Positions 6,720 through 58,100 of a stretch of 64,000 nt of DNA are shown here, in pieces. The position numbers were made by a program, and so were the translations under genes. The notes under the pieces are model-generated. The model was not told where the DNA came from. It searched no databases and saw only the letters and a list, made by a program, of their open reading frames with translations. This DNA comes from Hamiltosporidium tvaerminnensis FI-OER-3-3. Taxonomy: Eukaryota > Fungi > Microsporidia. The stretch spans positions 868,001 through 932,000 of the forward strand of contig CM061251.1 of assembly GCA_022605425.2 (NCBI GenBank), written 5' to 3'. Position 1 is the first letter of the stretch. Each line of letters begins with the position of its first letter.

Positions 6720-8190
6720 AAATTGCGATATGCGTCCCCTATTAAGGCTCCCTGCTGTTACAGTAATAGTTATCTTACTGAAGTCAATGAGGCAATAGAT
6801 TGACACTTTATATGGGGTTATCGGTGGTCTTATTCTAAAAAATGTACTATCACATTTATATCCCCTCTTTTTTTCGCTTTAGCTAATTATATCTAGCAGC
6901 GTTGTTAATTTATTGTGTTCTATATTTCTGAAATCATGATTTTTTAATAAAGTCTTAGCCTCAAAAATTTCAGAATTTATTTTTAATATTTTTATGTATT
7001 TCTTTCATGAATTTAAAAACTTTTGTAATTCGTAGTAAGAATTTTTTTTTCAACAATGAAACTTCTGAAATATTATTCTTTGGGTCAATCTGAAAATTAA
7101 TCTTTGAGTTCTTTGATGTATGCGTTCGATAGGAAATAGTGCATAAATGATTTTGGTTGGTGTCTTGAAGTACAATTGGTACAGATATTTGATAATGGAT
7201 TTCTGAATGATATCAGCTGCTTGTACGAATGTTCTGTTTACGCCGAGAAGATATAGTGGGTAGTCGAGGTGTGGTCGAACGTATGTACAATACGCTCTTA
7301 AGATGAATCTGTAGATGTTTGTATTTTGTTTGAATCTTTCTCTTCTCATTATATTTCTTAAGACTGCTGCTGCTTGAGTCGCCTTTCTTCTTGCATTCTT
7401 AAGGCTCTGGTTTGTGTCAGCACATCTCAAGTTAAAGTAATATCCCAGATATTTTAATGGTGCTTGTTTTTGAATGATTTCACCATTTACCCTTACTTTG
7501 TATTAGTGCTTGCATTGTAGAAGCATTTTCTTTGATTCAAGTGTAGTTGTTGTCTTTTGCGTGGTTTTCAATAGAGTTTATCATGTCAGTGAGTTGAGAT
7601 ACGGTGGAAGCAAAGATGATGATATCATCTGCGTACAACAAAATGCCTTTTCTTAAGTTTCTCAGAATGTATGAGAAGATATCGTCTATGAAAACGTTGA
7701 AGGGGCTTGGTGATATGATACTTCCCTGAGGAAGACCTACTACAGCAGCCTTAAAAAGTTCCGTTGTAGCTTTTTTAATTGTGTATTGATTGTTTTCAAC
7801 CAAAGATGCTATAAGTTGAGTGTCTAGTAAGGAGAGTTTTTGAAATTTTAGAAGTTTTTCATATAGTTTGTTCCTATCCACAGTGTCATAGGCCTTTTTT
7901 ATATCTAGAGTGACACAGATCATCCCTCCATTGCTTGTTCTTAACAAGTTAACTAGAAACAGTGCATGGTTTAATGTACTGTGCTTTTCTTGGAAACCTG
8001 CTAGTTGTTTTCTGATTTTAAAAGAAATTTTTGAAAGAATAATTTTCTCCAATAATTTGCGTGTCTTCTCAATTAAGGAGATTGGTCTATAATCACCCTC
8101 TCCTTTTGGTATTGGAGTTATGCAGTGTCGTTTCCAGGATGTAGGGATTTCGTGTGTCATGATGATTTGGTTGAAGAGAGTCAGGGTTAG
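6720..8190 (-). mobile_element. LINE copy A: 5'-truncated non-LTR retrotransposon (RT and C-terminal region), least decayed copy
   Basis: ORFs 7537-8160 and 7050-7430 contain WK..ITPIPK, YRPISL, LDIKKAYD, GLPQGSIISP, YADD, YVRPHLDY and LFPIE. Frameshifted. 3' stem-loop at 6725-6756. Confidence 0.95.
7537..8160 (-). pseudogene. Non-LTR reverse transcriptase fragment
   Basis: YRPISL, QLAGF, LDIKKAYD, GLPQGS and YADD motifs. No APE domain upstream and a frameshift downstream. Confidence 0.93.
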
Positions 8191-11100
8191 AAAGGGATTT
8201 TTTTAAATAATCTGGAATTTTTTAAATTAATGAAAAAAAATTAAATTTAAAAAATAAAACAATTCACAATGAGTGGATAACACACCACCTGAAATGTAAA
8301 ATATTATACTACTACTCCTAATGGCTGTTAAATTATTTTTATCTAAGATATGTAGATTATTCATTTTTGAAAAAATGATCTAAATTTCAAATTAAATTAA
8401 AATAAAATAAAACATACCTCTTTGATTGTAATGAAATCCCCCCTCATAATATATATACAAAACAACTCCTAAAGAAATGTTATCACCTCACAACCCACAT
8501 TTATCAAGATTATTCAAATTTGTCAATAAAGTCCCGGTAGCGCTCTCTACCCTAAAGTTACTTTAAACGTTATAGCTAATAGTGCCACAAATTGCTTTAT
8601 GTGTAAATAGGACTAGGATCAGCGGCTTGAATCAAATTTAAGATTTCTGAAATATCATCACGTTCCTGTATAGGATTTATGATTTCTTGAATAACTAAAA
8701 AATCATGTTTTGTTAAATTTTTAAAGTTGAAATTTTCGAGTTGTTGAATTTTCAAAAAATATTAAGAAATTAATCCTCAGGTTTTCTTATTTAAATTTTT
8801 AACTACTTTCTTAAAATCTTCATTTATAATCATCTTTTGGTTTTTCTAACTATATTTTTAATTTTCTTTAAGTTTGTATTGTCATTTTTATAGAGATGTT
8901 GTAGAATTGTTTTTTTTACCTTATTTAAATTTAGTACCGTTCGAATATCTAAGTCTGATCGCTTTTTTTTCTCATAGATTTGATTGAGTAAATAGCACAG
9001 ATAATTTTTGTTGGAGTTCTATAATGTATTTTGAATAAGAATTTTAAAACGCCTTTCTGATTTCTGTCAGAAGACTGTATGACATTTTATTTCATCCCTA
9101 TAATGCCAAAGGATAGTCAATATGTAAGCGTATGTATGATATGTATGCTCTAAGTTTGCATTGAAAGATGTTTTCTGAATTTAAGGTTTTGCTAGTTTGA
9201 ATAGCTTTATTTGTAGTGTAGAAAGCTCTAATACAATTTTCTTTTACTCTTGTGAGGGATTTATTAGTATCTGCGACCGGTTATTGTACAGAACCCTAAT
9301 ATTTCAAAAGATTTTTTTTTTAATTTCGTATTATAGCTTTGCTATCAATATCTTTGCTTGCAATATAAAAGAATTTTAATGGGTTAAATCCATAGTTGTC
9401 GTTTCTGCATTTTTTTCCAAAAATTTTATTATGGTATGTTTTGATCAATTCTTTCTGAAAAAATCATAATATCGTCGCCATATAGAATTATCTGGTTTCT
9501 TAAAGTTTTTGGGATGTAATTAATAAAATAATTAATGAATACGTTAAAGAGTAAAGGAGAAATTATGCTGCCATGTGGAGATCCAAGGGCAGCTTTTTTG
9601 TATAACGTATATCATTAGATCCATAAATCGTTTATTCATTGTTCTCAATTAAGTTAGCTATTAATGTTATATCACTTAATGAAATTCTTTGATGATCTAG
9701 CAGTTTTTTTATACATTTTTTTGCAGTAAACACTATCATAAGTTTCGTTTATGTCAATTTAACACATATCATGCATTCACTATTGTGTTTCAGTTATATA
9801 TCAATCGTCAGAACATGGTTTAGAGTAGAGTGGCTGGGTTTGAATCCGGTTTTTCGCCTATGAATTGTAAATTTGAGTTGAGTAAAAAAAAGTTTTTTAA
9901 AAAGTTTACGCGTTTTTTGTATGTACGATATTGGTCTGAAGTCATTGTTATCGTTATAATTGTTGAGAATTATGTTTTTTTCAACATTCAGGTATCTGTT
10001 GTTCTGTTATAATTTTTTTAAAAAAGTTGTGTGTGTTTATATATGAAATTCTCTGGGCAGTTTTTCAAGAATTCATTGCGAATCCCTGATCTTCCACCTG
10101 ATTTACCTGATTTTAGAGTTGATATCATATATTTGACTTCATTAAGCTCAAAAAGGTTAATTGTATTAGATTCATTAAAGTTCTTTGAATGTTTGTATTT
10201 TTCGTAATATATTTTGATTTTGTCAATTACATTATCAGTAAGTATTACTTCTTTATCTAAAATATATTTATCAATCAATTCTTTAAAGTTTTAATTAGTT
10301 TTTGGAATATTATTTCAATAAACTTAATTTTTTTTGTGTCTCGGAAATGCTTAACCCGACGTATTTTGTGCGAGAGGCTGGTACATCAGATATGCTAAAT
10401 CGTTTACGAAAGAATTTTATTTCTTTTTGCAGTGTTTCGTAAAGTTCTGTATTGGTATTTCTAGCTTCTTCACGCATTAATCGGACTCTTTGTATTATTG
10501 GGCTTATTCTTTGTGCCTTTCTAGTACGTGTTTTAATGTATAAGAATGATTGATCTATAATATAGTGTAGCATGTTGCAGCTGTCATTTACGTTTAATTT
10601 ATCTAATAGAGGTTTTGCTTTAAAAGTTTTTCTTTCAATTCTCTTTGAGATATTATCTGCTATGATTGTATCCTTTAGTAAGTTAATTTTATATTTTGGT
10701 CGTTTTATATCTTCTATTATTGGTAATGTTAAAAGAAGTATTTTATGGTTAATGTTAGCGATATATTCGGTATCTATTTGTATCTGACAATTTGAGAAAA
10801 TTTTTTCTGGAGTTGATGTTTTCTCATTATGTAATATGTGATTGTTTCTATTTCATTTTCATAAAGACCATACTCAATATGGCTATTTAAGATGTCTTGC
10901 TCTAGTGCAGGCTTTTGCTCTAGGTTATAGTCTCCTAATACTATTATCTTATTATTAGTATGAGTACCAAGACCTGGTAGTAAAACGTTAGGTATTTTAG
11001 AAAAGTGATTTCTATTAATAAAAATAAAAACATACTTATCAATCTTTATTGTAAGTTCCATCTCCGTAACTCCATTTATTAATTTTACTTTAAAACCGTT

Positions 11101-12500
11101 TTTACCTATTATCATCATACCTTCTTTGTTAGAGGGTCTATTTGTTACAGGGATAGAGGGTTTCATGTGTATAACGTGGTAATCTTTGTGAAGGTAGGTA
11201 ACACTATCCTTCCAAGTTTCAGCAATACCAATTATATCTAGGTTTTCTTTCTGAAGTATTTCATTAATTCTATTTATCTTTAAGCCGGACAATCCTCCTA
11301 CATTTAGGAATCCTATTTTTTTAATCATGGTGAGTATGTGTACTCTTGGGTCCTGAGTGTAAGTCGTTACTAATTTCGGTGGCCGCGATATTAGCACTTC
11401 TTAAACACTCAAGCAGTTTGGACCTCTTAGTTGTTGTAAGTTCAACTGCAAATTTTAAAAGTTTTTTATTAGTATTACTTTTTCTTTCAATTATTTTCTT
11501 TAGTCTTTCAAATAATTTTTCCGTATCAATTTTTCCATTATCCTGTATTTCCGGCGATTTTTCAACGTAAGTTGCCGGCAGTTTAGAGATTGTTTCAATT
11601 AGAATATCCTTTCTGTCTTCCCGACAAATGATTTCCATAGTATCATCATTAAGTAAATCCATGTTATTATATATCTACTCATTGATTCTGAAATAGAATC
11701 TATTGCCATCTTATAAAATTTGATTTTAAAATTTTCTTTATTGAAGTAAATGAAAATGTATTTCGATTCTGAGAAAGTTGTATTGCTAGATAAGATTAAA
11801 CTGATATGTTGATTTGAAAGTTTTTGGGATGTATCATACGTTATAATTTTATATCGCTTTTATGTTAAATTTCTTTCTTTTAGAAATAGAGTTATAGTAT
11901 TCAAAGAATCTGTCGTTTACGTTCATACATTACCATTAATTTTGTTTGTATTTCTTTTTTGCAATGTTTTTTTCTTTTCAGCTTTAATTTTTTTATAATC
12001 AAGGAGGTTCTTATCGTAAATAATATCTTTATGGATTAAAGATTTCTTTTTATCAAGATAATTATTCCGATTAAATTGTCGTAAAAGTTTATTGATATCA
12101 ACTTGTAATTGCTTTGCTGTATTTTGCTGGAAATAATTATAAGATTAGGTTTGTTGTAGAAGAAGGTATAAGCAAATCTTGTTCATTTCGATTTTATATA
12201 TCCGTTTTTGAATTATCTTGTTTAGCATTAGTAGTATTACAGTTTGGACATCTTATTGGTCTTTCGATTTTTATTCTTGGGTGTATACTTAAGTTGTTAT
12301 TGGTTTGTGAGTGTTTTTGTACTCTTGTTTCGGTTCATGTTCTGAAGAATATTGGTCAAGGTCTGAAAAAGAAAAGATAGTATCCATGGTTAGTTTTCTT
12401 AGGTTTATTATGCGTTATTATTGAGTTATTGTATTTTCGCTTTTTTTTGTTCTTATCAAAAGTATCCTTGGGGACAAAACTAAAATTCTATGTAAGATTT
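8191..12500 (-). mobile_element. LINE copy B: near full-length, decayed (ORF1 remnant, APE endonuclease, RT, 3' UTR)
   Basis: APE motifs KIGFLNVGG, IGIAETW and VLGDYN (10774-11397). Linker KSGKSGGRSGIRNEFLK (10018-10278). Decayed GSPHGSIISP (about 9555-9585) and YGDD (about 9472-9483). ORF1 C-terminus at 11321-11662. 3' stem-loop at 8522-8551. Confidence 0.92.
10774..11397 (-). pseudogene. APE (apurinic-like) endonuclease domain of LINE ORF2
   Basis: GFLNVGG, GIAETW and LGDYN are canonical exonuclease-endonuclease-phosphatase motifs of APE-type LINEs. Confidence 0.9.
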
Positions 12501-12519
12501 CCGAACTTTTCATTTATTG

Positions 12520-13900: not shown

Positions 13901-15328
13901 ATCTTTCAGATTTCTAATTCATTTTAATAAAAGAAATTTTTTATATCGAACAGCATTGTTTAAAAATTTCCTGTCATTATGATACACAGAAACGTTGTTA
14001 TTTACCGAAATTTCAGAAAGAAGATTTAAAAATGATATAATTTGTAAGTATATAAAAACAATTTTTTATGTACTATATTGTACGATGTCTTTTAAAATAA
14101 TATATCATATTACAAAGTTATATTTTTTCTAATTATTTTAGAGTAAACAATATATCAAATATATAAATTTCCGTACAACATCTAAAATAATTATAAAAAG
14201 TCATATTTCGGCTTTCGATCCAATCAAATTCGCATAAATACATACTTTTTGTTATAATAAAGCTAAAAATCTACTTACATATTTCCTATTGATAGATTTT
14301 ATTTGCTAATTAAAATTAGGTTGAAGTTTCCTCCGAAACAACTGAAATATAAAATACAGTACTAGATAGTATATTATAGATTTTTATAGTAACATAAAAA
14401 AATTCTGTTCTATTTTCACTAATTATTTAAGTTTAATTGACTTTTTTTTTTAAAATATAAGAATTGTTCATACTATGATGTGAATTCGTACTAAATTTAA
14501 AAATTTATAAATCAAAAATATATTGTTTCGTTAAAAAGATATAGTAAAAGCTTTTAAATATTCCATATAATCTGTATAAAACAAAATTACCCAAAAAACT
14601 ACCAAAATTAACTTAAATCTAGCCGTATGAATAAATAACACAATTAAAAACATATGGAAAGATATAAAAATATTCATTATATACCGAATCTTATATGCGA
14701 ACTTCATTTACAAAAAGAGTTATTAATTTTTTAGTTAAACATACAAATTAATCTGCAAAACAAAGTTTATGGATATATAAACAACAAATCTATTAGACTA
14801 CCAACCCAAATCGAAATATTTATAACTATGGTGACATTCTTCTATTTATCTAGAGTATTAGTATGTTTATAGATTTTATTAAAGAATAATTTGAATTTAG
14901 AATTTTTTTATTATCATATGAAATGTTACAAAGAGAATTTTTAAACAAATATACCAATATCCTTTTCTCATTAAATCGAAAGCAATTGAAATTTAGAAAA
15001 AAAAAATTGTTACAAGGTTACCGTAATATCTAAGCTATGAAAGAAAATAATGATATATCAAAAAATAATTGTAAGATCAAATACTATGTAATGCAGACCG
15101 ATAAGAAATGATATAGAGGAAATGTATAGGAAACCTAATACGGCTGAATAAGAAATATATTTTTAACCTATTTCTACTCACACATCTGAAAAATATACTT
15201 CTTGAAAGAGAAAAATTAAACATATCATTCCTTTATTTATATTTCTATTATCTCTATATTATACCTCTCTTTTATTTTTTTTATTATTAGATCTAAAAGA
15301 TTTTAATTTCATTCAAATGAAATTTAAA

Positions 15329-16951
15329 AGGGTTTGGAAAAGAGAATTCTATTTAAATAGTAAACTAATTAATTTAAAAATTAAATTAATTTTACACTGG
15401 CATCACTAAAATTAACACCCCTTTACTGGTATCTAAAACCAGTCACATGTTAAAGGGTCTTACACGTCCACATCATCACCATTTCTTGTAAAATTAGTAA
15501 ATACGGCAGTATTGTCCCGTTAGGGCTCCCTGCCTCTAGTAAGCATAAATTTTTAATTTGTAAAAAATTCTTGTGTTGAAAGAATCTGGCAAAAATTCTT
15601 TATTGTAAATTTGGGTTTATTTCAACCGCAGAAAAAAAATTAATTATTTCGTCCATTTCATCGCGTTTGTGGACTGGTCTGATAATTTCTAAAAATATTC
15701 CGAAGCTCATTCGGGTTTGTATTTTAAAATTGTGCTTTTTAATTGGTAAACTCTATCAAATATAAGTAGATTTAATTTGAGATTTTCCTTTTTGAGCTTT
15801 TCATATCTGATTTTGAAATTATCATTTGTATATCTTGATTCGACTGCTATTACTATAATTTTGTAGTTGCGCATATTTTTTGATTCGAATCTAGCATAAA
15901 AGTTTCCAATTATTGTATCATTATTTGTTCTAAATCTAATTGCTGCTGCGATCGCAGTCTTTCCGCGCGTTGTGTTATAATCTCAACTGGGAACAATGCG
16001 TATAAAATCTTACTCAGGGCCTTAAAGTATATTTTGAATAGGTATTTTCATATATCTTTTTGTATTCTATCTGCCGCTTGGTTAAATGTCTTGTTACATC
16101 CGAGTAATACTGCATGATAATCAATGTGCGGTCTTACGTATGCTATATAAGCTCTCAATTTTGATTGATACAGCTTATCATTTGACGTATATATGTTTCG
16201 CAGCATAGATTTATTGGTTATTGCTGCAGCTTTGGTCATTTTCTGACGAAAAATTTTGATCGTCACATTCACATCTGCACACCGGTTATTAAAGTAATAT
16301 CCGGGGTAATTAAGAGGGTTTTTTTCGTTATAATTGTATCATGTATAATTATTTCGTGTGCTTTTGCCGCGTTATAGAAGCACTTTTTAGGGTTTAAATT
16401 GTAATTATTTTCATCGGCATGTTTTAACACACCTTTAAGAATTTCTTGTATATTTTGTAAATTGTTATTGCAGATAATTATGTCATCTGAATACATGAAA
16501 ACGCTATCGCGTAGTGTTTCAGGGACCTAATCTATAATGCCATCTATGAAGATATTAAAGAGAGCAGGGGAGATTATACTCCCTTGGGGCAATCCTAGTG
16601 ATGCCTTTTTATATGTATTAAAGTCTTTTTCTGAGCTTATTGTGTATTCGTTATTTTCAATTAACGATGCTATCAAAATGTATCATTTAACCTAAAATTT
16701 TGATTTATTATTAATTTTTAATATAGGAATTTTCTGTCTACACAGTCGTAGGCTTTCTTCGTGTCAAGCGTTACACAGGTTAGTTCACCGTTACTATGTC
16801 TTAGTAGTGTATCAATCGTTAACGCGTGGTTTAAAATTGAATATTGTGGCCCAAATTTGGCTTGTTGTTTATGAAGTTTAGGAATAAAATTCAGAAAAAT
16901 TAATTTTTCAAATAGTTTTCTTGTCTTTTCTACAAGTGATATAGGGAGAAA
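15329..16951 (-). mobile_element. LINE copy C: 5'-truncated, RT to 3' UTR
   Basis: PISLVEKTRKLFEK at the 5' break, LDTKKAYD, GLPQGSIISP, YSDD, YVRPHIDY and LFPVE. Stem-loop at 15505-15534. Confidence 0.92.
15505..15534 (-). other. Conserved 3' RNA stem-loop of the LINE/U family (best copy)
   Basis: GGCAG-GGAG-CCC-TAAC-GGG-ACAATA-CTGCC. Homologs at 6725, 8522, 17133, 18875, 30809, 33736, 39910 and 55321. Confidence 0.75.
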
Positions 16952-18625
16952 TTTAGGGGAAAATAAATTTTATTTAAATAATTTGACAAATTGAAAATTA
17001 AAACCACAAAAATATTTTTATATTCCAGAAAAACTCAATGGAGCAACACCCCCTCCTCACCTCTATTATAAGTTGACCGGGGTAGTCAACATATTACATA
17101 AAACTCCGATAATTTTAAAATTATAGAAATATGGCAGTAATGTCCCTTTCGGGATCCCTGTCGTAACTTTTCTTAATTTTTTTGAAGGTTTCTTGCAAGT
17201 TTATATTCTGGCAAATAAAAGGATATAGAAATATATAAATTTATTGAAAATGTTTCCGATTCCGTTGATTGCTTAAAAAATTTTCACATGGTTTTCAAAT
17301 AAAGTAAATTGTTATATTTTTCTTTTGTTATAAAAAATATTTAATTTTTCTCAAAGTTTCTAAAAAGGGGTTATTACGTATAGATATACTCATTTTGGTT
17401 TAAGTAATTAAACCAACTTTGGTTTTTCTTTTCTTTTCTCTCTTATTATTTTTGTTTTTAAGTTATAGAATATTTTCATATGAGTATATCTATTATTTTA
17501 TTTTATTTTTTTTTTAATTTTTTTTTTAATTTTCTTTCAAAGTTTGCTTAAACGTTTCTCACAACTCGGCCAAAAACTGTGGGTTAGTACCATCAGCGGG
17601 CAATATTTTCCACTTGAAATAAGTTTAAAATTTCTGAGATTTCTTGTTTCTTCCTAAATGGACTCAAGATTCTTGTTATTTTTTCAAAATTGGCTTTGTT
17701 GCTATTTTGAAAATTATACTTTTTTAAAAGTTCAATTTCTTGGAAAATATCAAAATTAACCCTAAGATTTTCTTTATTCAGTTTCTTGAATCTTTCTTTG
17801 GCGTCCATATTAGGTAATTTTTTTCTAAATGTTTTAATACAGTTCTTGATATTTCTGATGTTCTTAGTGAATAGTCTAAGAAAGGCAAATCTTATTATTG
17901 TCTTTTTCATTTGTAGTATTCTCTCGCCAAGACTATATCTTAGTCTTTCAACTCTCTGATGAATGATTCTATCGGAAATAGCGCATAGATAATCTTGGAA
18001 GGGGTTCGGTAGTATATATTGTACATAAATTTAATAACACCTTTTTGTATCCGGTCTGCCGCAGTGTTAAAAGTTGTATTGTATCCTAAGAGTACCGCGT
18101 GATAATATATATGTGGACAAACGTACATGTTAATGCACGTAGCTTTAGTTGTGGTAAGTTATGAAAGGAATCAAATTCGGATCTTTTAAATGCTCTGTTT
18201 ATAATAACCGCAGCCTTTATAGATTTTTTTCGTATGGTTTTTAAAGTCTCGTTTGTATCGGCACAGCGATTATTGAAATAAAACCCAAGATATTTAAGCG
18301 AGTTCTGTTTTTCAATTTTCTTTCCATATATAAATATGTTCAAATCTTTCGTTGCATTATAGAAGCATTTTTCGGGATTAAAAGTATATCTATTGAGTGC
18401 TGCATGTTTGCAAAGTCCGTCAATTATGGTATTTAGAGCCACCATGCATGTCGAGTAGATGACTATATCATCCGCGTATAGGAAAATATGATATCTGTAT
18501 TTTTTCGGAATATAAGAAATAATGTCGTTTATGAAGATATTAAACAGTATAGGAGAGATAATACTTCCCTGAGGTAAACCCAGGGCAGCCGTTTTGAATT
18601 TTATATTACCAGTACTTTTCTGACT
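16952..18625 (-). mobile_element. LINE copy D: 5'-truncated inside RT
   Basis: ORF 18086-18637 has GLPQGSIISPILFNIF, YADD and KYLGF; LFPIE lies in 17940-18128. Stem-loop at 17133-17162. Confidence 0.93.
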
Positions 18626-21600
18626 TAGGGCGAACACATTTATTTAAACAGAAATCAGCTTTTCCATAGACATATACAATATCTGATTTTGATTTGAAGT
18701 TTAAAAGGATAGAGTCAGATACACAAGAGCAAGTTAGGTTGGTAAGATAGGGATAAATAGAGAATTCGAAATATATTTAGTTCATATAGAAGAGGCCCTG
18801 TTGTGTTATAAGTTTTTAAATTCTAAAAATGCTTGCTTTATATACATTCTTATAAAAAATATTCCATCTAAATAGGCAATATTGTCCCGTTATCGAGCTC
18901 ATTACCTTAGAGATACTGTAAAACAGGTATTGACGTTGATAAGATTATATATCAACATTTTCATAAGCGAAAAATTCACTTATTAAGTAAAGTCGACTGT
19001 TTTACCAGATCGAACGAGTTAGTTGTTTACTACCATATGTATTTATGTCCCGACTTATGCACATAATCTTACATGAGCCCTTTAACAAACCATATCAGCG
19101 TAGATAGTAAGAGTAAAAGTACATTCAGCTGCGAATATCAAAGTAAGAACGAAATCGTTCCGTATTTGTGGCATGTGTTTCATTGCTTCTACATAAGTAT
19201 GGTGAAAAAGAAATATGTCAGGAAATCGGAGGATTACTACTAAGAGATAGATAATCCCATACCCATAGACAAAGTAAGAGTACCACAGTAGAAGATGCCA
19301 CAATATTAAAAATTTAACTATATTTATAGTTTTATATTTTTAATATTCAATCATCTTTCTTTATTTATTTTAAGTAGACAAATCGAAATTTTGATGTATA
19401 ATCTCTAACCAACAGACACAATCATCGAAAGTTAATTTTTTGAATTATAACTACTTGTTTCCATTAATTATAAGACTAAGTTTAAATCCTTTTGCTTTGA
19501 TATCCATCTAAAAATATATTTAGATCTCAAAGTGATATTAATATCTTGTAATTCCCACTAGTATAGGTATTTGTTCATTATGTAAAGACTTGTTCTTAGC
19601 TTTATATCTAATTGGCAAAGTAAATATTAGAAATGATTTAAATTAATTTAGCTTAAGTGAAATATATTTATTAAAGATTCATTAAATCTTTATACCAAAT
19701 TAAAATATTATGGATCGAAATTGTTTTTCGTGTGAATCCGTAATGATTCATAAGAAAGTCAAGATCAAAAAAACCAAAAAACATTAATCCAAACATTTAT
19801 AAAATGTTGTAAAATTGTATTTGAACAAGGTAGATAAATTAAAAATATTGAAATTAACAAATAATTAAATAAAAACAGATAATGAAATGTAGTTTGCATT
19901 TTGAAGTAGTATAATAAGAACAATATTATCAGTTCGAGACATATTAATGTACTATACAATTTATTTAAATTTAATTCTTTAGATAATTAGAGTAAAATAT
20001 TAAATAAGTCTAATAACAAATATAAAATAATGGAAAGCTAAGTAATATCGTTACAAATATAAAAATTATGTTTTAAATTGGTCGAATATGAGTTAATAGT
20101 AGAAAAGGAAATTTTTATATGAATATATTGAAATGAATCAAATATAAAGATTCTCTAATATAGATTTTAGGATTTAGCGAGAATAACTTACTTCTGTATA
20201 AATCTAAATAAAAGTATTTTATTTCAACAAAGTCAATAGTATCACACTTCTAAAAATTCTCTTAAAAGTATTATACATGATATTTAAATACTCTTTCAGA
20301 TTTATATCATTCTTTAAATTAGAATTGTATTCTTTATAAGCAACAAAAACAATATATTTATAATAGAAGCTATAACTGTAAATAAATTGAAGAAAGGTAA
20401 ATAGTATAAGGTTATATAGGAATCCAAAGTTATGTATGAATACCCTATATGATCAAATTTTCATTCAGTATATTGAAGGCTTTTGAAAACATGTTCTCAA
20501 AATTTAATACGGCCATATTTAGGTCAAACACAACGTATTATGGCCAAGATTAAAAAATATTATTTTAAGATACTCAGTTAAGGTTTGAATAGTTAAAATG
20601 TTCTAAATGACCATAAAAAAGCAAGCAATACCTTACACTCAAAAACTTCTAATTATAGTAAATTTTATAAGTTTATTAGACTTAACACTCAAAAATCATA
20701 GAAGAAGAGAAAATACTATATTATATATTCAATAACAACACATTTATACGAATCAATGAATTTAACTGTAAATGAATATTAAATTAGCATAAAATTAATA
20801 AATTACATCAAAGTATAGTAAAATCATAATTTATTTAGAACTAAGTATTACTTTACTAAAACAAGACAAGATTAAAGTAGCCAGAGTTGTTTTATAATTA
20901 GAAAAACTGCGCATGAGCAACAAGTATAACTTGGTAAAGGAATAACAAAAGAAATGTATAAAAATAATAGGAACAATTTAAAACAGAAAATTGGACTAAA
21001 AAAACATGAAATATGAAAAAAAGCAATTAAAAATAGAATTAAAATAAATTTTATCTTAACCGACTCTATACAAGTGAAAATTCTAAACTAAGAAAACATA
21101 AATAAAATAAATGCTTAACTAAAATTTTCCACGTAAAAGAATTAAAAGTTCGATAATTGTAAATGAAATTTGAAATGGTACAATTTTTTATGCAAAAAAG
21201 AAATATTTTATCTTAGCCGCTATAAAAAATACTAATTTCATATAGAACATAAAATATGAAATATATACTAGTTTATATTACAGAAAAGACTCTACAGATT
21301 TTATACAATATAAACTTAAGTTACAAAAAAGCAACTGAAATCTACCACTAGTGATGTAAAATAACGAGTTAACCAATATAAATAAATTTTCCTATAATAT
21401 AAAGCCAACATCATACAGTTAAACTTAAAAAATATATGATAACAACAAGTAAATTATTTTAAGTAAGTAATAAACATACAAATCAAGCGTTTAATATGTT
21501 ATAAAATTCAAACTATAAAAATTTATAGCATAATACAGAAGAAGTGACAAACGTATTAAAAAAATGTATAAAAAACCTACTAAAGTTTATATCCCAAAAA

Positions 21601-22900
21601 TATGTACTTAGTGAAAATACATAGTATTCCAAATAATATTTTTTAATGAAACATCTAAATTTTATCTTTTTTAGTAAAATTATTGTGTAATGAATTGAAT
21701 CGAACAACCAAGCACTGTTTATTTTCGTTATTAATATCACATTTTACAGCCTTAAAATTGTATACTCCTGAAACTCCGTAGAAAAATAAAATGTAATACA
21801 AATCTAAGTGAGAAAAGTATTTGGTCTAAATAAAAACCGTATAGTTTTATAAGAAATGATATGTTATTCTAGGTGAATTATAAATTGCATTGTAAACTAA
21901 AAGAAACTATGGATATTTAAATTAAAAACAATAGTTCAGTTCGATAAGATTTATTTCATTAAAAAATTAATACCACGATGAATCGTACAATACAAACCTT
22001 TCAACATCAGAATCAGTTTTTTATGATGAACTAATATAATATAAAACAAATACTACCCTAAACAAAAATAAGCGGTAAATTAAAATATCAAAACAATATT
22101 ACAAATTTATAATAACAGACTATCTCGGTTATGAAAAAACTATATTTCCGATATACCACGCCATAAGATTGATTAAAACACTTACATTCTTTTTACACAG
22201 AGGCTAGTATGGATTTTTTTAACGACATTCAGACAGTGTTAGGTTTAAAATATGTGACGGACCTCCTCCACACTATCTGTACCACTTACGATACCCATTC
22301 TAAGGCTTTCATTTATAAGGTATATAGCAACTATTATATAGAAAAGTGGTTTAATTAGCGTTTGCCCATATCTGTTACTAAATTTTGATTGTAGGTAGAA
22401 CACAGCTCGAACTTAACTTTTCGAAATTATGCAGAATTTTCACTTACTCTATTTACTCCGAAGCCAATAAATGCTAGCTTAAATATATTTTGATGACTAA
22501 CACAGACCTACTTAGACAATGCAATATCATAACAAGAGTATAACATGTTAAATCGCTTCACAGTTTTAAAATTATTTAATTTCTATCTCTTTACGGTAAG
22601 TCTTAAACCTCAGATATAGATGAATAAGTCTCTATCTTTTTACATAGCGATTAACCACAAGTTTAATTGATGTCTTCAATCTAGCCACGTAAAAAACCAC
22701 AAAATATTTTATAGAAAACTTTTCGAGTTTAGAGATCTTTTTTTTTAATAAGAACAGCCATGGAACCCTAAAAATATAGTGTAGTGTTTTACGAACTAAA
22801 AGATCAAACAATGAATTCACTCATACCCTTCATCTTTCATTTTCCAGTAAAACAAACTTAATGTGGTTACCGCTCTCCACTATGGCCTTAGCAATTAGAA
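18625..22900 (-). mobile_element. U element copy U1 (about 4.3 kb, no RT motifs found, LINE-type 3' stem-loop)
   Basis: Colinear homology with 55170-59280, 30610-33550, 33550-34210 and 39730 onward (e.g. ATTCACTTATTAAGT, TTAATACGGCCATATTTAG, ACCTTACACTCAAAAACTTC, TAGAAAAACTGC). Stem-loop at 18875-18906. The right boundary is approximate. Confidence 0.75.
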
Positions 22901-29062: not shown

Positions 29063-29101
29063 ACCCCTACAAAACAAAAATATTTTAAATTTTGTAGGGG
29101 T
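29063..29101. repeat. Perfect 12-bp inverted repeat (ACCCCTACAAAA - 15 nt - TTTTGTAGGGGT)
   Basis: Read directly from the sequence. Confidence 0.85.
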
Positions 29102-39700: not shown

Positions 39701-39729
39701 TATCAACATATCTAAAAAAATAATAAAAA

Positions 39730-44600: not shown

Positions 44601-45849
44601 GATTAACAAATATATTTTAGTTATATAAGAATAAGTTTTTGTTTCAAATTACATTTTCGGCAATATAAATATAATAAGAATTATAAAAGTTCATAAGAAA
44701 TTTTTTTGAGTGGTTTATAAGCCAAAATACTATGAAGCATGGAGTTAATTATGATAAACCTGGTTCGATTGTATATCTGTTCTATTTTATATAACCGTCC
44801 TTAAAACAAAAGCATATTTTTATCATTTCCTGTAAGAATATGCAAAAACATTTCAAATTAAGTATATTAGTCAAGATTTTTTATAAACAAAGTTAGCTTT
44901 ACATCTCAATCACTTCAAAAGAAAACTGCTAAAAAAATATTTAAAAGAATATTTAAAAGAATATTTAATAATTAGATTGTAAAATTGTGCAATAAATTTC
45001 GATGGAATTAAAATTTTGACTCAAAAAGTTAAAAATATAAAGAAATCTTTAAAAAGATATGCAATATTATTTAAAAAATGTTAAAAGTCCTCACAACTTT
45101 TTATTTATTTATTTTACGTTTAAACAAACGAATGTAATTAGTTATAAACCGGTAAAATTGAATAGATTTATAAAAGGTAAATTTAGCTCTACTCCTAGAA
45201 ATATGAAAAGAATTTCCAAAAGTACTATATATTTGTAAAAAGATGTAACTAAATTAATAAAATTGATATAAATAGTTAAAAAGACATTAAACTTAATAAA
45301 TACAGACTATACTTCTAACTCTGGAATAAAAAGTCTATTATATAAAAAAAAATGCCACTTTTTTTATAATAATGCAAAGAAACATTAGAAGATATTAACC
45401 TATACAAATTACAAAGAAAATAATTTAGTGACCATTGTTAAAAGGAGCAAATAAAATTTAATCCACATAAATATCTAAATACTAAAAAAAACCATTGATT
45501 TAATACAATGGTATGCCTTCTAAATATTTTTGGTAGAAATCCAACGAATAACATTTCTAAATTTTAAACAAAAATTAAATTGAGAGTTGCTTCATAACCT
45601 TACGTAAAAATAAAATAGATATAAAATATATATTATAGGCAGAAAAATATCTAAAAAAAATCCAATTAAACAAAACGTGCAATTTAAAACTAAAAATTTT
45701 ATAAGTTTGCAAGAATGTGTTTAAAATTATAATTTAGATAAAACTGGAATTAAAATAAAAAAAATAGGAATAGAAAAGAACAAAAAAATCAGTTTATTTC
45801 AAACTTAATATAATTGCTTAATAAAAAAATACAATTACATTGAAAATGT

Positions 45850-48800
45850 ACGTATGTCCAAGACCTAATACTACATAAGAGGCTTATTTCTTTTTTTTTC
45901 GAAAAAATCTTTTATTGCTTGTACGATATTAAATTTTTCTTGCTTTAAAAAAATTAAAATTCTTTGGAAGTCTTTAAAACCAATCAAATCAAAATCATAA
46001 TATTTTAACAGTGTAAGATCCTTCCAAAATTTTTCTATTCTTATTAAGGCATTCATTTTTAATTATTTTAAAATTTTAATTGAACTAACGCTATCTTCAA
46101 ATACATATTAGACACATATATCTTTTATAAACTTAAAAATCTTTGTATTGTTTCTTATAACTTCATACTACAAACGTGTTTCTTTGTTTTCAGGAATTCT
46201 GAAAACGAGAGCAAATGTAAGTCAGATTAACCTTTGTTGTATTGTTTCAATCGGAAACAGGCATATATTTAGGTACTAGATGTTTTCCTAATTACCGAGA
46301 AAAAATACACCAAAGCCCCTTTAAATTCTTCTGTTATTAAGACGAAAGCACTATTTGCTGCTAGTAAATGAACATAAAATCAAATTTCGGTAGATCAGCA
46401 TAAGATAACCCTTAAAGAGCATTGCAAAAAACAGAGGGTTATCTTTTTCAAATTTTTGCTAAAGGCTGATCCTCAGAAATAGCTGACCTCAGAGCGTGTT
46501 TTATAAGTTCCTTAAACGAACACCTTGTATAAACACATTTTAAATTTAAGAAAAAGCCACGATATTGATAAAACCTTGTTTTACTAGTCCTATATCAATT
46601 ATTCTGATGCTAATCTTTGATTTTTGCCTTATAAACAGTCCCTTTGTTTCTTTTAGCCGATATTTGTTATCATGTGAATGTTTTTGGATGTATTATATTA
46701 GTTTAGAAATCTGTTTTGATATTAAAACATATATAAATATTTCTTCAGCATATATAAAAATGCTTTTTTTCTTTAATGAAGGGATATATAAAATAATGTG
46801 ATCGAAAAACCTTAAAAAGATCAGATAATATGACAATCCTTCGTAGCGATCCCCTAGAACCTAGCGTGAATTCTATTAACAAGTCCCCTCTACTGTAATA
46901 TACATAGAGTTTTGAACGAGTTCTGCAATAAGAAAAACATGATCTTTTTAAAATTTTATGAGTTCAATAATTTCTTGTATACTTCTTCTCATAACTCGGT
47001 ATCACTCGCTGATTTTATATTATTCGAAAACAGATTGAGCTTCCCTCACCCTTAACGCAAAAAATAATCTACACATATTGCATTATTCAGTGTCAACGCT
47101 TTTTCTTGAAAACCTGTTTGAAGATTGCGATAAACAATTAAAATTTTCTTTTTATGATCCTTCAGAATACTTTAATTTTTTTACATCAACGCGAACGGCC
47201 CATAGGCCTCATTTCCTTTCTTATCAATTCATTTTTATGTATTTTCCACGCCGTAGGCACGTTAGGTCAAAACAATCGTACTAATTACGTTGTTCGGATG
47301 TTTAAGAAAATTTCTAGGCATGGTTTTAGGCTTTCATTATTTATTCCACTCTATTCGCTTAAGTTTCTACATTGTAAAAGAGTTATATCATGTACCATAT
47401 CTGCGAAAGTAATTACATCTATTTTATCAGCTCTTTGTTGCAGTTATCACCATGAACGTTTCTAGACATTTCACATATTATATCTTATATTCTTACTAAT
47501 GAGATGTCTCTGCGTTTTCGAAGTTGGATCGTAGCAAATCTATTGCTCTTTATAACCTAGACTTTTAGAAATGGTATAACTTACAATTTTTAAAATTTCA
47601 CCTAGATTTAAGTTAACATAAGTTTTTTTCTGATTGCCTCAACTAATTTTCTGTATATTTCTGCTTTGGGCTTGTACTTATCATAATATATTTTTAAATA
47701 ATACGTCATTTTTTTTTCTTGCGAGCTGTTTTTCTTCTTCGCTATAAATGTGACAAATCCAGCTCATGACACACCTTTGCGTTCTTTCCCGTATTTACCG
47801 TATTCTTGATGTTCTGAATAATATTTTAAGTAAAACATTAAGCTTTCTCATAAGCAGATTATTCAAATAAACTTTCATTCCTTTCTTTTAAAAACAGAAT
47901 CCTAGGTATTATCTTTAAACGAATGGCAGTAATTTTTAAGATATAATTATTACACAAATTTAGTATTTATTTTCTGCCTGTTAAATAATAATTTAAATCA
48001 TTTTGTGATTTATGTTTTTAATCCCTAAGACTTCTGCTTATAGGCGAATTCGACAAAACCTTATCTATCTTGAAAATTAGTTTCCATGTTATATGCAAAA
48101 GAATATATTTTTTGTTTTAAATCTACCCAGTGCAATGTTTCTGTTCAATATTTGTTGTTCCTACCACGTAGCTGGTTCCGAATTATAGCCACTGACACCA
48201 AAATATTAACTTTTATAAATTTAAGCGAAAAAGAGATGATTATTTTTGACGAATTACTAGATGGAGACTTGCAAATAAAATATATAAAAGTATAACACAG
48301 CTTTATACGACTCGAAAATCAATAATCGATGGTATTATGGGTAGTAAAATAAATTACGAGCCAATGCTAGCATTTCTTTTATTTGAGTATATTTTTGGAT
48401 ATTTTTAAAATTAGGATAGCAGATATTTTATATTTTGAATCTAATTTTTCAATATCATCTCGCCACGTTTCAGCCAAAGCAAAAATACTTAATTAATTCT
48501 TCTCTAAAAGTTGATTTTTTGCACCTATTTTGTTCTCGGAAAAACCTTCTAGGTTATGAAAGCCAATATTATATAACTTCAATGTTTTTATTTTCATCGG
48601 GGAAAAGTTTCTTGTCTGAGCCAATACCTTTTACCCCCTTTATTTGCTCCAAAAAGAAACTCGGATAATTCTTTCCTATTTACATTATTCAATTGACCTG
48701 CAAATCTTTTAATTCTCGCCTTTGTGTTATGCTTTCTTTAATAAGTGCGTTTCATTCTCTCTTTAAGTTAGATATGAATAAAATGCTTTTGTTCATCTAT

Positions 48801-49400
48801 TTCACGACAGTCTTTAAGACCTTTTGCAGTCAATATTTCAAATGAATGTATAACATCATCTTTACATTTGTCTATACATATGAATTCTAACGTATCTTAA
48901 CTTGAAAAGTAAAAGTTTATGATAAATCTCGCCTATTCTCATTTATAGCCGTCAGAGCGAGTTTGTATGAACGTGTTCTTTTTCTTTTAATTCCTTTAAA
49001 ATATGAAAAAAAGTATTTTTTTATAGGGAACGGGGATTCTCCGGCTATAACTTTATCCATATGATCCTTGGATACCTTTAAAACCGTCTTGCTATTTGCA
49101 TTATTTGCATCAGCCTCATTAATTGTTCTAAATGAATTTCCGTGTTTTGTTTTCAATCCCAACCATATTTTCCGTTGCAATCCGTTCCTTCGGCCGTTCT
49201 TTTATATTAATCAAGGTGGTAGAAAAGTTTCAACTATTTTTAGGCATAAAACGCTAAAAGTTGTTGCGAAAGGACATGAACGTTAGTGGTTGTCTTTGTA
49301 CATTTATTACGATTATTTAACAAAGAACAATTTGGAAAATTTAATTTTAATTAATTAGAATCTTTTTTTCCCAATTCGCAATTGAAATATTTGGTGTTCG
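45850..49400 (-). mobile_element. LINE copy E: near full-length, heavily decayed
   Basis: Minus-strand remnants NIGFHNLEG and FALAETWRDD (about 48455-48570), YAEE at the YADD position (about 46741-46752) and LFPIETIQQRL (about 46228-46260). ORF1-like 48917-49180. Confidence 0.8.
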
Positions 49401-55050: not shown

Positions 55051-55169
55051 AGGGAATCTGAAAATACGATATGGAATCACATTATATAAAAAGAATACAT
55101 ATCTATGTTAGAGCCTAAATCTCGCTCATGTATCAAAATTGACAAAAAGTTTTTGTATACGTTTATACG

Positions 55170-58100
55170 AAACAGGTAAGGATAATTAACAAGAATAAGG
55201 TTTTTTTATTAAAGTAAATAAAAGTTATTAGTTTTTAAAAGTTTAACCTATAAATCATAAAATAATATTTTATCGTTTTTTCTTTATGATATACATCTTC
55301 AAGCCGAGTTCTTTCAAATAGTCAATTGTATCCCATAATTGGGCTCTTTTCCTTGGAGTTATCGTAATCTAAGTTAATGATATTGGTATAGGTATTTACC
55401 AATATATTCTAAGTCAAATCATTCACTTATTAAGTTAAATCAGACTTTAACAAAGACCGGATGAGTTTATTGGCATTACCGTGTGAATCATAATAGAAAC
55501 ACATGTAAATAACCTTACATATGTACTTTTATAATACAAATTAGCATAGGTTGTGAAAGATATATATATTCTCAGTTGCGATTTTTTCAGTAAATGTATA
55601 TGTTGATCGTGACTTTTGTTTATATTGCTTTACTATAGATTTAATCTTTATTTATACAAAGAAGAATCAGAAGTTTCATACTAAGATGGTCTTAACTCAC
55701 TCGTAGCTGATGCCTTAACCTATAACCCTATTCACACTTTATTTAATTTTTTATAACCATTTGTCTTTCTATTTATATTTTTATTAGACAGATTTAAGTT
55801 CCATATGATAATCTATAAATCAAAAGATACTAGCATAGAAATTTTATTTGATGAGTTACAAATACTTGTTTCATTAAATTATAAAACTTTGTTTTATTTG
55901 TTTGCCTTAATATCTACCTATAAATATATTTAGATATCGAAATGTAATCATTATCTTTTAATTCACACCAATATAGGCATTTCTTTATTTTTTGAAGATT
56001 TGCTCGAGCTTTATATTAATTGTCAAAATATATATTATAAAATGAGTTATATTATGATGGTTTTTACTGAACTATATATATTAAAGATTCATTCTGTCTT
56101 TATACCAGAATTAAAATATTATTCAAATTATTTTAATCCGTATTGCTTCAAAGAAAGTGAAAAATCTAAGAAAACCAAAATAATATAGATATACATACCT
56201 TTTAAAAAATAGTTATAGCAATCGTCATTAACCTAGGTAGATAAATCAAGCGCATTGAAATTAACAAATAATTAATGCATAAACAGTTATTGAAATGTAG
56301 TTTTTATAGAAAGTAATATAAATAAAATAAGGTTATCACTTCAAGAGGTTTTTCTAAATATACTATTTAGTTTTATTCAATACTTTCGAACTTAGCACTA
56401 AGATAGTATATAGATTTAATAAAAAGACCTTACAAAATTTAAACATTTAATACATTTATTCTATAAAAATTCAATTTGGTTCACTCTGGCTATATATTAT
56501 GAAATGAAATATTTATTTATATGGATATAATGAGACAAATTAAATATTAAAATCTACTGCCTATGGATTTTATTACATATGAATAATAAATTAATGTCTT
56601 ATAAATCTATAAAAATATAATCCATTTCAAGAAAGGAATAAGTATACTTTTCTCATTAATTCATTGAAAAGTTCAATACATGATAAAAATACCTTTTCAA
56701 ATATACATCTTTCTTTCGCATATATTTATGTTTTTTTAAGTAACATAAACAATACATTTATAATAGATGACTGGTATTTTGCTCAATTTAAGGAAAGGAT
56801 AATGATATCAAGTTATATAGAAATCGAAAGTTATCTATAAATCCCATATATGATTAATGTTGGTAACAATATACTGAGAGCTTTTCTGAACAATTTCACA
56901 AAAATTAATACGGCCATATTTAGACTGAACACAACTTATTATGACCAAGATTAGAAAACCTTATTTTAAAATGGTTAAATATGGTTTTAATAGTCTGAAT
57001 ATAATAAATGAACATAAAAAAACCTACAATACCTTACACTCAAAAACTTCCAATTATGGTAAATTTTAAAAGCCTATTAAGGTTATCCACTAAAAATCGT
57101 ATAAAAAGAGGAAATGCTTAAGTATATATTCCAATGCAACATATTGATATGATTAAATAAATTATAAGATAAATGACTATAAAATTAAAGCGTTTAAGGA
57201 AAACAAGATAAAATTATAGATTATTAGAAAATAAAATGGTTTTTTATTCTATAACTTTAAGATTAAAAGAACTAGATTTGTTTTATGAGTAGAAAAACTG
57301 CTTGCATAAGTAACCAATTTAACTTAGTAAATGAGTAACAAAAGAATAATCCGAAAAGAATTTAAGCAATCAAAAGAAATGTGGATTCGAATAAAAAACT
57401 TTGAATTATAAGAAGTAAAAAGATATAAACAAATGAAATTTAAAACAACAAACTAAATTTAAGAACCATTCTGTAGTTAGAAAATATAACTAAAAAAATA
57501 ATAAACTAAAAAATTCAACTAAAAAGCTTAAAGATGAAAAAAAAAGTAAATAAAAGTCAAAATATGATGCAAATTTTTATATTAGAGACAGATTAAAAAT
57601 TTAACACATATAAATTATATCAAATTCAAATTAAACATAAAAACGAACCAGAAATGGTTTATATCGATGAAGGGGCTATATTATTTATACAGTATAAGGG
57701 TTAGTATAAAAAACTAACTAATAAATTTGAACTATGTATCTGAAATAAAGACTTAGTTAAGATATATATTTTTATAACAAGGAAAGCAAACACAAAGATA
57801 GTTAAATTTAAAATTACATATAAAAAATAAATATTTATTTTGAAGTATGTCATTATAATTCTACTGCTAATATGCAATACAATTGAACTTACCATAATAT
57901 ATCAGAATTAATACTGAAGAATAGACACAGTATTTGAGAAAATAGATAAAAAAAACTTAAGTAAGATGTATATTTAAAAAGATGTATTTGGCCAAAGTAA
58001 AAAGTATTCTAGACAATTAAATTAATTGAAATTTAAATTTCTAATTTTAGATAGAATTTTTGTGCAAATACAAACGAAAAGTAACATTTTGTTTGAATAT

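Follow-up and report, generated by a model that had tools for sequence, protein, structure and literature searches.

How a LINE reverse transcriptase (RT) chooses its template has been worked out for just a few elements of animals. The closest described systems include the stringent L2-clade LINEs, UnaL2 of eel and ZfL2 of zebrafish, with their partner SINEs. In these a hairpin of about 30-36 nt in the LINE 3' region has its stem split by an internal loop or bulge and is accompanied by a separate terminal priming sequence, an arrangement that is shared with non-autonomous elements without ORFs (PMC1636434, PMC4176376). In UnaL2 neither the 3' stem-loop, with its internal loop, nor the terminal repeat is dispensable, and its SINEs have the two as well (PMC1636434). 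SART1Bm of Bombyx mori, like TRAS1, is a LINE associated with telomere repeats that encodes an apurinic/apyrimidinic-type endonuclease and an RT. Its stem-loop-containing 3' UTR is recognised in trans by the element proteins, which mobilise only those reporters that have this UTR, and it has been proposed that telomere-like bases in the UTR anneal to the target (PMC7265360). The R2 protein binds the structured RNA of the R2 3' UTR, by which the template for target-primed reverse transcription is selected (PMC11194090).

We describe here a hairpin of 29-33 nt in a superfamily of LINEs (non-LTR retrotransposons) of Hamiltosporidium, with a 64-kb stretch of DNA from H. tvaerminnensis (the window) as the starting point. 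It is most likely a 3' recognition hairpin of LINEs, a known kind of signal that is new in microsporidia, and it is not mentioned in the papers that we consulted on this genome and on microsporidian transposons. As in UnaL2 and ZfL2 the stem is split by an internal loop, a separate terminal sequence lies downstream, and both are shared with elements that have no ORFs, here called U elements. However the hairpin resembles UnaL2 neither in sequence nor by Rfam model, and several details differ: the Hamiltosporidium loop is GNRA or A-rich and that of UnaL2 GGAUA, the element ends in AAUAAA...CCCUAA where UnaL2 has a short tandem repeat, the partners are elements of 3-4.6 kb rather than tRNA-derived SINEs, and the host is a microsporidium. 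The hairpin is also 170-550 nt from the terminus, whereas in UnaL2 it directly adjoins the priming site, and a gap of this size counts against a recognition role.

The layout is nearer to that of SART1, in which the structured region is also hundreds of nt from the 3' end. The Hamiltosporidium LINEs likewise are associated with telomere repeats and encode an endonuclease of the apurinic/apyrimidinic type and an RT, and their 3' UTR may be recognised in a similar way. SART1 has a poly(A) end and an A tail remains in its genomic copies, whereas Hamiltosporidium copies end in CCCTAA without a run of A. With R2 the likeness is in having structured 3' UTR RNA, for which a template-selection role would be by analogy. 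R2 differs in its restriction-like endonuclease, single ORF and rDNA target, the Rfam R2 element has no match here, and the likeness of our ORF2 to the R2 RT is confined to the RT core (E 1e-11).

Table 1. Hairpins, LINE remnants, 3' termini and non-coding elements in the window
Feature	Positions	Strand	Remarks
Hairpin A	6725-6756	-	38.2 bits; z +0.39; decayed; in 3' UTR of decayed LINE A; intact version of the family is H. magnivora locus L073
Hairpin B	8522-8551	-	45.2 bits; in 3' UTR of decayed LINE B
Hairpin C	15505-15534	-	45.8 bits; z -2.2
Hairpin D	17133-17162	-	42 bits; GAAA loop
Hairpin U1	18875-18906	-	55.9 bits; z -3.0; inside non-coding element U1
Hairpin U3	33736-33768	-	44 bits; bulged U in upper stem
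Hairpin U5	39910-39940	-	43.6 bits; outer stem decayed
Hairpin U4	55321-55352	-	48.4 bits
LINE A	6882-8202	-	ORF2 (RT) remnant upstream of hairpin A
LINE B	8600-11823	-	remnants of ORF1 and of ORF2 (endonuclease plus RT); hairpin B lies downstream
LINE C	15603-16969	-	ORF2 remnant upstream of hairpin C
LINE D	17596-18643	-	ORF2 C-terminal remnant; 93% aa identity to intact L033 ORF2
Further decayed LINE	45874-49129	-	ORF1 and ORF2 remnants; terminal-like motif at 45764-45798; hairpin unrecognisable
LINE D 3' terminus	16953-16974	-	AATAAA-N-CCCCTAA, 179 nt past hairpin D
U1 3' terminus	18625-18644	-	AATAAA-N-CCCTAA, 249 nt past hairpin; directly abuts 5' end of D
U1	18625-21862	-	non-coding, about 3.2 kb; any ORFs shorter than 90 aa; without homology to ORF1 or ORF2
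U2 body	31762-33503	-	68% identity to U1 body; head-to-tail behind U3
U4 body	55742-58067	-	69% identity to U1 body

A preliminary description of the window had reported the hairpin in nine divergent elements. The eight sequences that it quoted are each present letter for letter on the minus strand at the positions in Table 1, but in the ninth element, the decayed U2, no significant hairpin was detected. A covariance model built from the eight copies and searched over the whole window with filters off gave 38.2-55.9 bits for them, all on the minus strand, and at most 17.8 bits for anything else. The G:C to A:U swaps, the GAAA loop of D, the variable length of loop and inner stem and the G.U pairs are all as reported, and the hairpin is indeed kept in otherwise divergent elements, being common to LINEs and U elements. 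The nine are not independent however, as the flanks of U1 and U3 cluster and two other contigs carry duplicates of the block. Hairpin C has an identical counterpart in H. magnivora locus L076, hairpin B is nearest in sequence to the U-type hairpins, and element D is a 5'-truncated copy with 92% identity to an intact LINE in L033 and L032. Folding is good for intact or young copies (z -2.2 to -3.0) and poor for the decayed window copies A, B, U3 and U5 (z +0.4 to -1.3).

The lower stem is of 5 bp, GGCAG/CUGCC or covarying versions of this, and the upper stem is of 3-4 bp with a bulged A. The internal loop is asymmetric and conserved in sequence, with GGA on the 5' side and A/G-N-U-A on the 3' side. 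Its conservation was part of the original claim and holds, but not the size of 4x6 given for it: folding predicts an extra G19-C34 pair with A33 bulged, and the internal loop is thus more likely to be 3x4 (GGA / NUUA). The terminal loop in most intact LINE families is a GNRA tetraloop, with GAAA, GCAA and GUAA all seen. The U-type variant has A-U at pair 15-40 and a U/A-G-A-G loop. The internal loop was also inspected by eye for a kink-turn, in which a three-nt bulge is followed by tandem sheared G.A / A.G pairs, and for loop-E. The 5' strand GGGAGCC resembles the non-bulged strand of Kt-7, and a conserved GA in register is absent from the 3' strand.

The position of the hairpin is best seen in intact LINEs, in which ORF2 is of 913-931 aa with RVT_1 and Exo_endo_phos-like domains. 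In every intact element examined that carries the hairpin it is downstream of the stop codon, the distance from the ORF2 stop being 390 nt in L033, 394 and 51 nt in L032 and 56 nt in L002, and in H. magnivora the hairpin is 52-59 nt past the annotated gene end. The proposal that the segment is conserved as a peptide within ORF2 is ruled out by this position past the stop in all intact copies and by the length, which varies between 29 and 33 nt. On the 3' side the AATAAA...CCCTAA terminus follows after 171-391 nt, or about 550 nt in one family, with the canonical AATAAA 9-11 nt ahead of the CCCTAA end.

The covariation that had been claimed for the hairpin is significant, but only in a larger alignment than that on which the claim was made. 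In the eight window copies 81.3% of cells are paired against 79.7% in shuffles (reached in 182 of 500), and their covariation score was matched by 46 of 500 shuffles, so that these copies are insufficient and all of the significance comes from an alignment of 34 distinct copies from about 12 lineages, H. magnivora included, in which 10 pairs were scored. In this alignment 91.3% of cells are paired, as against 29-46% after sliding of the 3' partner. Column shuffles gave 83.4 +/- 0.9%, with none of 500 reaching the observed value, and a tree-aware null, for which the tree was derived from the same 54 columns as the alignment being tested, gave 66.6 +/- 5.4%, with none of 2000 reaching it. Cells changed on both sides number 32, as against 5.9 expected under the tree-aware null (2 of 2000). 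The compensatory changes are at four pairs: 14-41 (AU/GU/GC), 15-40 (GC in LINEs, AU in U elements), 22-30 (CG/UA/AU/GU/UG) and 24-29 (GC/AU/CG/UG). Four pairs with change on both sides is not above column shuffles (246 of 500), and the covariation signal is in the number of sequences that keep the pairing and not in the number of double-changed pairs.

The same alignment indicates which strand is involved, as the 26 G.U cells against 10 A.C cells make it 91.3% paired in the sense direction and 86.3% in antisense, tying the G.U pairs to the sense strand, which in the window is the minus strand. RNAalifold recovered both helices at -9.3 kcal/mol from an independent MAFFT alignment of 12 family representatives, and only 2 pairs from the full 36-row alignment that included flanks and decayed copies. 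Among the 12 lineages, which were defined by their flanks, the 150-nt flanks have 53-55% identity, which is background, and the hairpin 66% as against 47.5 +/- 6.3% for random 31-mers. We conclude that this is very probably a real conserved RNA structure of the LINE 3' UTR. It had been proposed as an RNA-level structure of the sense strand, and the compensatory changes, the variation of the loop within GNRA and the excess of G.U over A.C are all in agreement with that.

The U elements, of 3.2-4.6 kb, carry the same hairpin and terminus as the LINEs. The U unit has one 5' boundary, which was found behind two different LINEs, and the U1 type has at least 5 different 3' junction contexts. Profile searches, even with filters off, found no remnant of ORF2 in U elements, and the absence of ORF1 and ORF2 similarity by tblastn and by these searches rules out U as a decayed LINE. 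We also considered U as a long 3' UTR of LINE family G, as there is a U-type hairpin 4.4 kb behind five G copies. However the five are segmental duplicates, and the finding of the same U 5' boundary behind a different LINE in L032 rules this out. The U-type hairpin variant was absent from the intact LINEs sampled, with only the decayed LINE B resembling it. The sample thus offers no current autonomous partner for U, which counts against the recognition role.

We found at least 70 copies of the hairpin in the genome, none more than about 190 kb from a contig end and without exception on the plus strand at left ends and the minus strand at right ends. They are in polar head-to-tail arrays of LINEs with the element 3' ends facing the centromere, and the canonical TTAGGG telomerase repeats lie distal to the arrays. 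The hairpin is common to about nine LINE families, four non-coding families and two species. Between families ORF2 has about 46-54% aa identity, and the best non-microsporidian matches are weak (24-34% identity) and to insect elements, some of them named jockey. In Drosophila the HeT-A, TART and TAHRE elements form polar head-to-tail arrays at telomeres, and HeT-A has no RT. The Hamiltosporidium arrays resemble these in polarity, with 3' ends toward the centromere, and in the coexistence of RT-encoding and RT-less elements (U in this case), and differ in that TTAGGG telomerase repeats are kept and U elements have no gag-like ORF.

With regard to function, we favour with moderate confidence that the hairpin is recognised by the RT or RNP which the element encodes, in the way of the stringent LINEs UnaL2 and SART1. 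We infer that ORF2p, with its endonuclease and RT, would bind the hairpin on its own transcript, perhaps jointly with ORF1p, and so select it as template for target-primed reverse transcription. Synthesis of cDNA would then begin 170-550 nt downstream, at the AAUAAA-then-CCCUAA terminus, and the CCCUAA could anneal to the telomeric G strand. U elements share the hairpin and terminus and would therefore be copied in trans as non-autonomous partners. Of the two functions originally suggested, RT recognition fits these features, but 3' processing is less likely, as the terminus is 170-550 nt downstream and has its own AATAAA 9-11 nt before the CCCTAA. Self-cleavage was another suggestion and finds no support, there being no match to an Rfam ribozyme at any threshold. 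We put forward more tentatively, as possible rather than probable, that the hairpin serves for template selection in a telomere-directed retrotransposition system, in which an RT bound to it would let the CCCUAA at the RNA end anneal to the TTAGGG strand, whole elements would be added at chromosome ends, and the ORF-less U elements would be mobilised in trans in the manner of HeT-A. If so, it would be an independently evolved system beside telomerase in a highly reduced eukaryotic lineage. The combination of hairpin, CCCTAA terminus and strict array polarity makes a role for retroelements in the maintenance of microsporidian chromosome ends testable.

A structured RNA could alternatively serve the transcript rather than the RT, in stability, export, localisation, translation control of the bicistronic RNA, or termination and polyadenylation. 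A site in the 3' UTR upstream of a canonical AATAAA is as for regulatory hairpins of ordinary mRNAs, and so variable a distance to the 3' end would be unusual for a priming-site element. We nonetheless think it unlikely, as the hairpin is common to LINE families in which the remaining 3' UTR cannot be aligned and to U units with nothing to translate, and the end-defining AATAAA-CCCTAA motif is separate from it and distant. The sequence conservation of the internal loop also points to one specific partner that would bind in all of these elements.

Still less likely is conservation at the DNA level with the pairing incidental, the segment being bound by a chromatin protein of subtelomeres or by a telomere protein, acting as an internal or read-out promoter for the next element of the array, or being homogenised by gene conversion. 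The occurrence of every copy in polar subtelomeric arrays would fit with this, as would the 3' ends of Drosophila HeT-A, which carry the promoter for the downstream neighbour, and conversion is possible since blocks are duplicated between chromosome ends. However it would not account for the double-sided compensatory changes, with 91% of cells paired against 67% under the tree-aware null, for loop variation confined to GNRA, or for the G.U excess on the sense strand, and the family-specific variants in flanks of background identity argue against recent conversion. A coding remnant or chance palindrome without function would be in keeping with the window copies, whose covariation is not above shuffles and several of which fold no better than shuffled sequence, and yet is hardly credible. 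It is refuted in practice by the position downstream of the stop in the intact elements examined with a length that is not fixed, by scores far above background for the genome copies, by retention in the second species, H. magnivora, and by the covariation of the larger alignment.

Other identities were considered. Rfam 15 gave no match to the window at gathering score, and at E up to 10 there was no relevant match for window positions 15200-19100 and L033 9190-9830; the models searched include the UnaL2 3' element, the R2 element and self-cleaving ribozymes. The low GC and few ORFs had suggested an organellar sequence with a group II intron domain V, which we reject as there is no tRNA and no Rfam match, and the ORFs are LINE ORF1 and ORF2. 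A metagenome scan with a degenerate hairpin pattern (120 loci, 121 matches) was at the level of chance, and both stems were present in only one match, on an unrelated contig of 53% GC. Two Logan contigs with an ORF2 of 30-33% identity end 48-50 nt past the stop, before the expected position of the hairpin. Four sequencing runs contain the stretch and look like DNA runs of high depth, and two RNA runs gave no reads of this organism.

We suggest that the hairpin be used in annotation, as it gives a means to label the 25% 'other' repeats of the genome as LINE-dependent elements, and the covariance model can be used to trace such elements in other microsporidia. For binding studies the hairpin is a natural mutational series, being kept across families that share about half of their ORF2 residues. 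The hairpin is missing from one intact LINE family, G (in L034), in which another hairpin directly follows the stop.

The hairpin is a non-coding RNA element shared by many LINE families and by the U elements. The window, positions 868001-932000 of contig C6, carries decayed non-LTR retrotransposons on its minus strand, with RVT_1 and an Exo_endo_phos-like domain, which lie head to tail with the long non-coding repeats U1-U5. The eight hairpin sequences quoted in the preliminary description are present exactly, on the minus strand, and a covariance model built from them (R1), run unfiltered on both strands of the window, returned the same eight at 38-56 bits, with all other matches at or below 17.8 bits. 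The hairpin is thus not a chance pattern of AT-rich sequence (window GC is 24%). There is no tRNA in the window and no Rfam match there at gathering score, and comparison with Rfam found no family that matches the hairpin. Neither the hairpin nor the arrays are described in the published accounts consulted on this genome and on microsporidian transposons, among them PMC10542269, PMC12449221 and PMC4202319; the last of these counts 12 LINE families in this species.

The genome assembly (21.64 Mb, 17 contigs) has at least 70 copies at E <=0.01 with R1, a lower bound as 150 of about 4,000 candidates were scored. No copy lies more than about 190 kb from a contig end, and all are on the plus strand at left ends and the minus strand at right ends. 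We read 34 distinct copies, covering about half of the genome copies; five of the 34 are from the sister species H. magnivora, reached via ORF2 homologues. Clustering of 150-nt flanks gave 12 lineages among the first 29 distinct copies, those of H. tvaerminnensis. Flanks of different lineages share 53-55% identity, the level of alignment background; their hairpins share 66%, where random 31-mers drawn from those flanks give 47.5 +/- 6.3%.

Single-sequence folds of intact or young copies (z -2.2 to -3.0) give a lower stem of 5 bp and, above an internal loop, an upper stem that ends in a tetraloop. The upper stem is C-C-C/G-G-G, with G19-C34 as its closing pair and A33 bulged. Folding is poor in the decayed copies A, B, U3 and U5 of the window. 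Covariation was originally proposed from the eight window copies, but in these alone both pairing and covariation are indistinguishable from column shuffles, so that the claim needed more sequences, and it is the 34-copy alignment that bears it out. With a 10-pair structure and 500 column shuffles, 91.3% of cells are paired (shuffles 83.4 +/- 0.9%), 32 cells are changed on both sides (9.2 +/- 4.1) and the covariation score is 0.323 (0.190), each value being reached by 0/500 shuffles; the count of doubly changed pairs (4) does not exceed that in shuffles (3.5, reached by 246/500). Column shuffles ignore relatedness, and each stem column was therefore also simulated along a tree relating the copies, its changes being placed at random in the number observed. 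Under this null, for which the tree was built from the same 54 columns, 66.6 +/- 5.4% of cells pair and the observed level was reached by 0/2000, while the 15 further pair types observed compare with 8.7 (1/2000) and the double-change cells with 5.9 (2/2000). Sliding the 3' partners 1-3 columns out of register lowers pairing to 29-46% of cells.

Pair by pair, the compensatory changes form classical series: A-U, G-U, G-C for pair 14-41, and C-G, U-A, A-U, G-U, U-G for pair 22-30. LINEs have G-C at pair 15-40 where U elements have A-U, and the extra upper pair 24-29 is G-C, A-U, C-G or U-G. There are 26 G.U cells and 10 A.C cells in the 34 copies, and the sense strand thus pairs better than the antisense (86.3%). 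RNAalifold recovered both helices (-9.3 kcal/mol) from an independent MAFFT alignment with one representative per family, and predicted just two pairs when given all copies, decayed ones included, together with their flanks. Loops in the intact LINE families are GAAA, GCAA or GUAA (all GNRA), or UAAC or GAAU. The internal-loop bases and a G-A-G-C ... G-G-A-C core are conserved in sequence, which points to a specific ligand or else to a non-canonical fold.

Intact elements have an ORF1 of 351 aa and an ORF2 of 913-931 aa with an endonuclease-like domain and RVT_1, and one intact ORF2, on a contig other than that of the window, has 98% identity to a reverse transcriptase deposited in GenBank for H. 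tvaerminnensis. In every intact element with the hairpin it lies 3' of the ORF2 stop (Table), which removes the possibility raised earlier that the segment is conserved as a peptide. The intact LINE of family G (ORF1 307 aa, ORF2 915 aa) is without the common hairpin. In its place, 5 nt past the ORF2 stop, is a 7-bp hairpin whose loop is CUUGGCCA. This hairpin, followed by TAAATAAAG, may be a second type of recognition hairpin in the same genome.

Table. Locations of the hairpin and associated features. L002, L032, L033 and L034 are H. tvaerminnensis loci outside the window, L073 and L076 H. magnivora loci, and C1, C5 and C16 other contigs of the genome.
Feature	Location	Strand	Detail
Hairpin	L033		390 nt after ORF2 stop
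Hairpin	L032, first element		394 nt after ORF2 stop
Hairpin	L032, second element		51 nt after ORF2 stop
Hairpin	L002		56 nt after ORF2 stop
Hairpin	L073		52 nt after annotated gene end
Hairpin	L076		59 nt after annotated gene end
Hairpin of decayed LINE B	window 8522-8551	minus	
Different hairpin of family G LINE	L034:6070-6115	minus	
Terminus	window 16953-16974	minus	
Terminus	window 18625-18644	minus	
Terminus	L032:8046-8069		
Telomere junction and polarity	L032:1-800		
Telomere junction and polarity	L033:1-500		
G-rich box	L033:9695-9720		
G-rich box	window 15400-15430	minus	
16-nt satellite	window 1-645		unit AAGTAGGAAAATAAGG
AT-rich tandem repeats	window, after satellite to ~1213		78-nt and 17-18-nt
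Array U1+D, U3, U5, U4	window 18600-58100		
Duplicate of array	C5:86-130 kb		
Duplicate of array	C16:108-115 kb		
Chromosome-internal LINE family	C1:589-622 kb		loci L026, L027, L029

Downstream of the hairpin the sequence is unalignable between families. All families with a readable end have AATAAA, 9-11 nt and then (C/T)CCTA(A), and these termini are common to LINE and U elements, at 171-391 nt beyond the hairpin, or about 550 nt in the case of one family. The copies examined have no A run behind the terminus, and there is often a partial telomere repeat before the start of the next element. Several LINE families have a G-rich box like GGGGGTGTTA between hairpin and terminus, absent from U elements, and second hairpins also occur there, such as GTTGAC...GTCAAC in L033. 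H. tvaerminnensis is a microsporidian parasite of Daphnia with the telomere repeat TTAGGG (PMC10542269, PMC12449221). The last bases of the elements are the complement of the telomeric G strand, and each of the 70 or more hairpin-bearing elements lies close to a contig end, its 3' end facing the centromere. On contig C9 the (CCCTAA)n telomere of the left end directly adjoins a 5'-truncated LINE; this junction and the polarity of the elements look like telomere-directed addition or insertion.

Around the hairpin, the U elements have no ORF that reaches 60 aa. All of their frames contain AT-rich noise only, tblastn finds no similarity to ORF1 or ORF2, and an unfiltered profile of eight ORF2s found nothing in them, yet readily found every decayed LINE in the window. 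The subfamilies are 68-75% mutually identical over 1.8-2.6 kb, and at least five different contexts are found at the 3' junctions of U1-type copies. The presence in five places of a U-type hairpin 4.4 kb behind family G raised the possibility that U is a long 3' UTR of that family, but this was rejected, as the five places are segmental duplicates (85-99% identical over 6-7 kb) and the same U 5' boundary is found behind a different LINE terminus in L032. Lacking ORFs and ORF2 similarity, and with its own 5' boundary and varied 3' junctions, U is thus a distinct element, 3.2-4.6 kb long and free of ORFs, that carries both the hairpin and the terminus found in the LINEs, as is characteristic of a non-autonomous partner. 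It is decayed LINE B whose hairpin comes closest to the U types, with an AGAG internal loop and a UUGAC 3' stem, and no intact LINE among those sampled has the U-type variant. To judge by its hairpin sequence, a B-like LINE may be the former autonomous partner of the U elements.

With regard to function, the preliminary description proposed an RT-recognition or 3'-processing signal. The structure, position and sharing of the hairpin are shown, and the best-supported reading, with binding and function inferred, has two parts: the hairpin would be what the element-encoded RT or RNP recognises, and the terminal CCCUAA would be the site of priming and annealing. The same two-part logic, a recognition element plus a priming or annealing terminus, is found in UnaL2, where a stem-loop with an internal loop and a terminal repeat are both required and are both also carried by its SINEs (PMC1636434), and in SART1Bm, whose 3' UTR can be recognised in trans and has bases resembling the telomere repeat that anneal to the target (PMC7265360). 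The 3'-processing alternative is less likely, because AATAAA is distant and separate from the hairpin, and the terminus indicates that the signal defining the 3' end is a normal poly(A) signal. Self-cleavage, which had also been raised, has no support and no relevant Rfam match. Elements of the kind favoured here, with RT recognition of a hairpin, are well known in animals and this is a new host group; the breadth is unusual, with many LINE families and long non-coding partners, plus the link to telomeres.

A different LINE family, chromosome-internal on C1, has ORFs as long as 1195 aa and is 35% identical to the RT of the window; its 3' UTR is not within the three loci. The window begins with about 40 copies of a purine-rich satellite, followed by tandem repeats. 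The array of U1+D, U3, U5 and U4 is duplicated on C5 and C16, with an identity of about 93% for the U1+D block on C5, the part for which it was measured, and subtelomeric blocks are exchanged between chromosomes.
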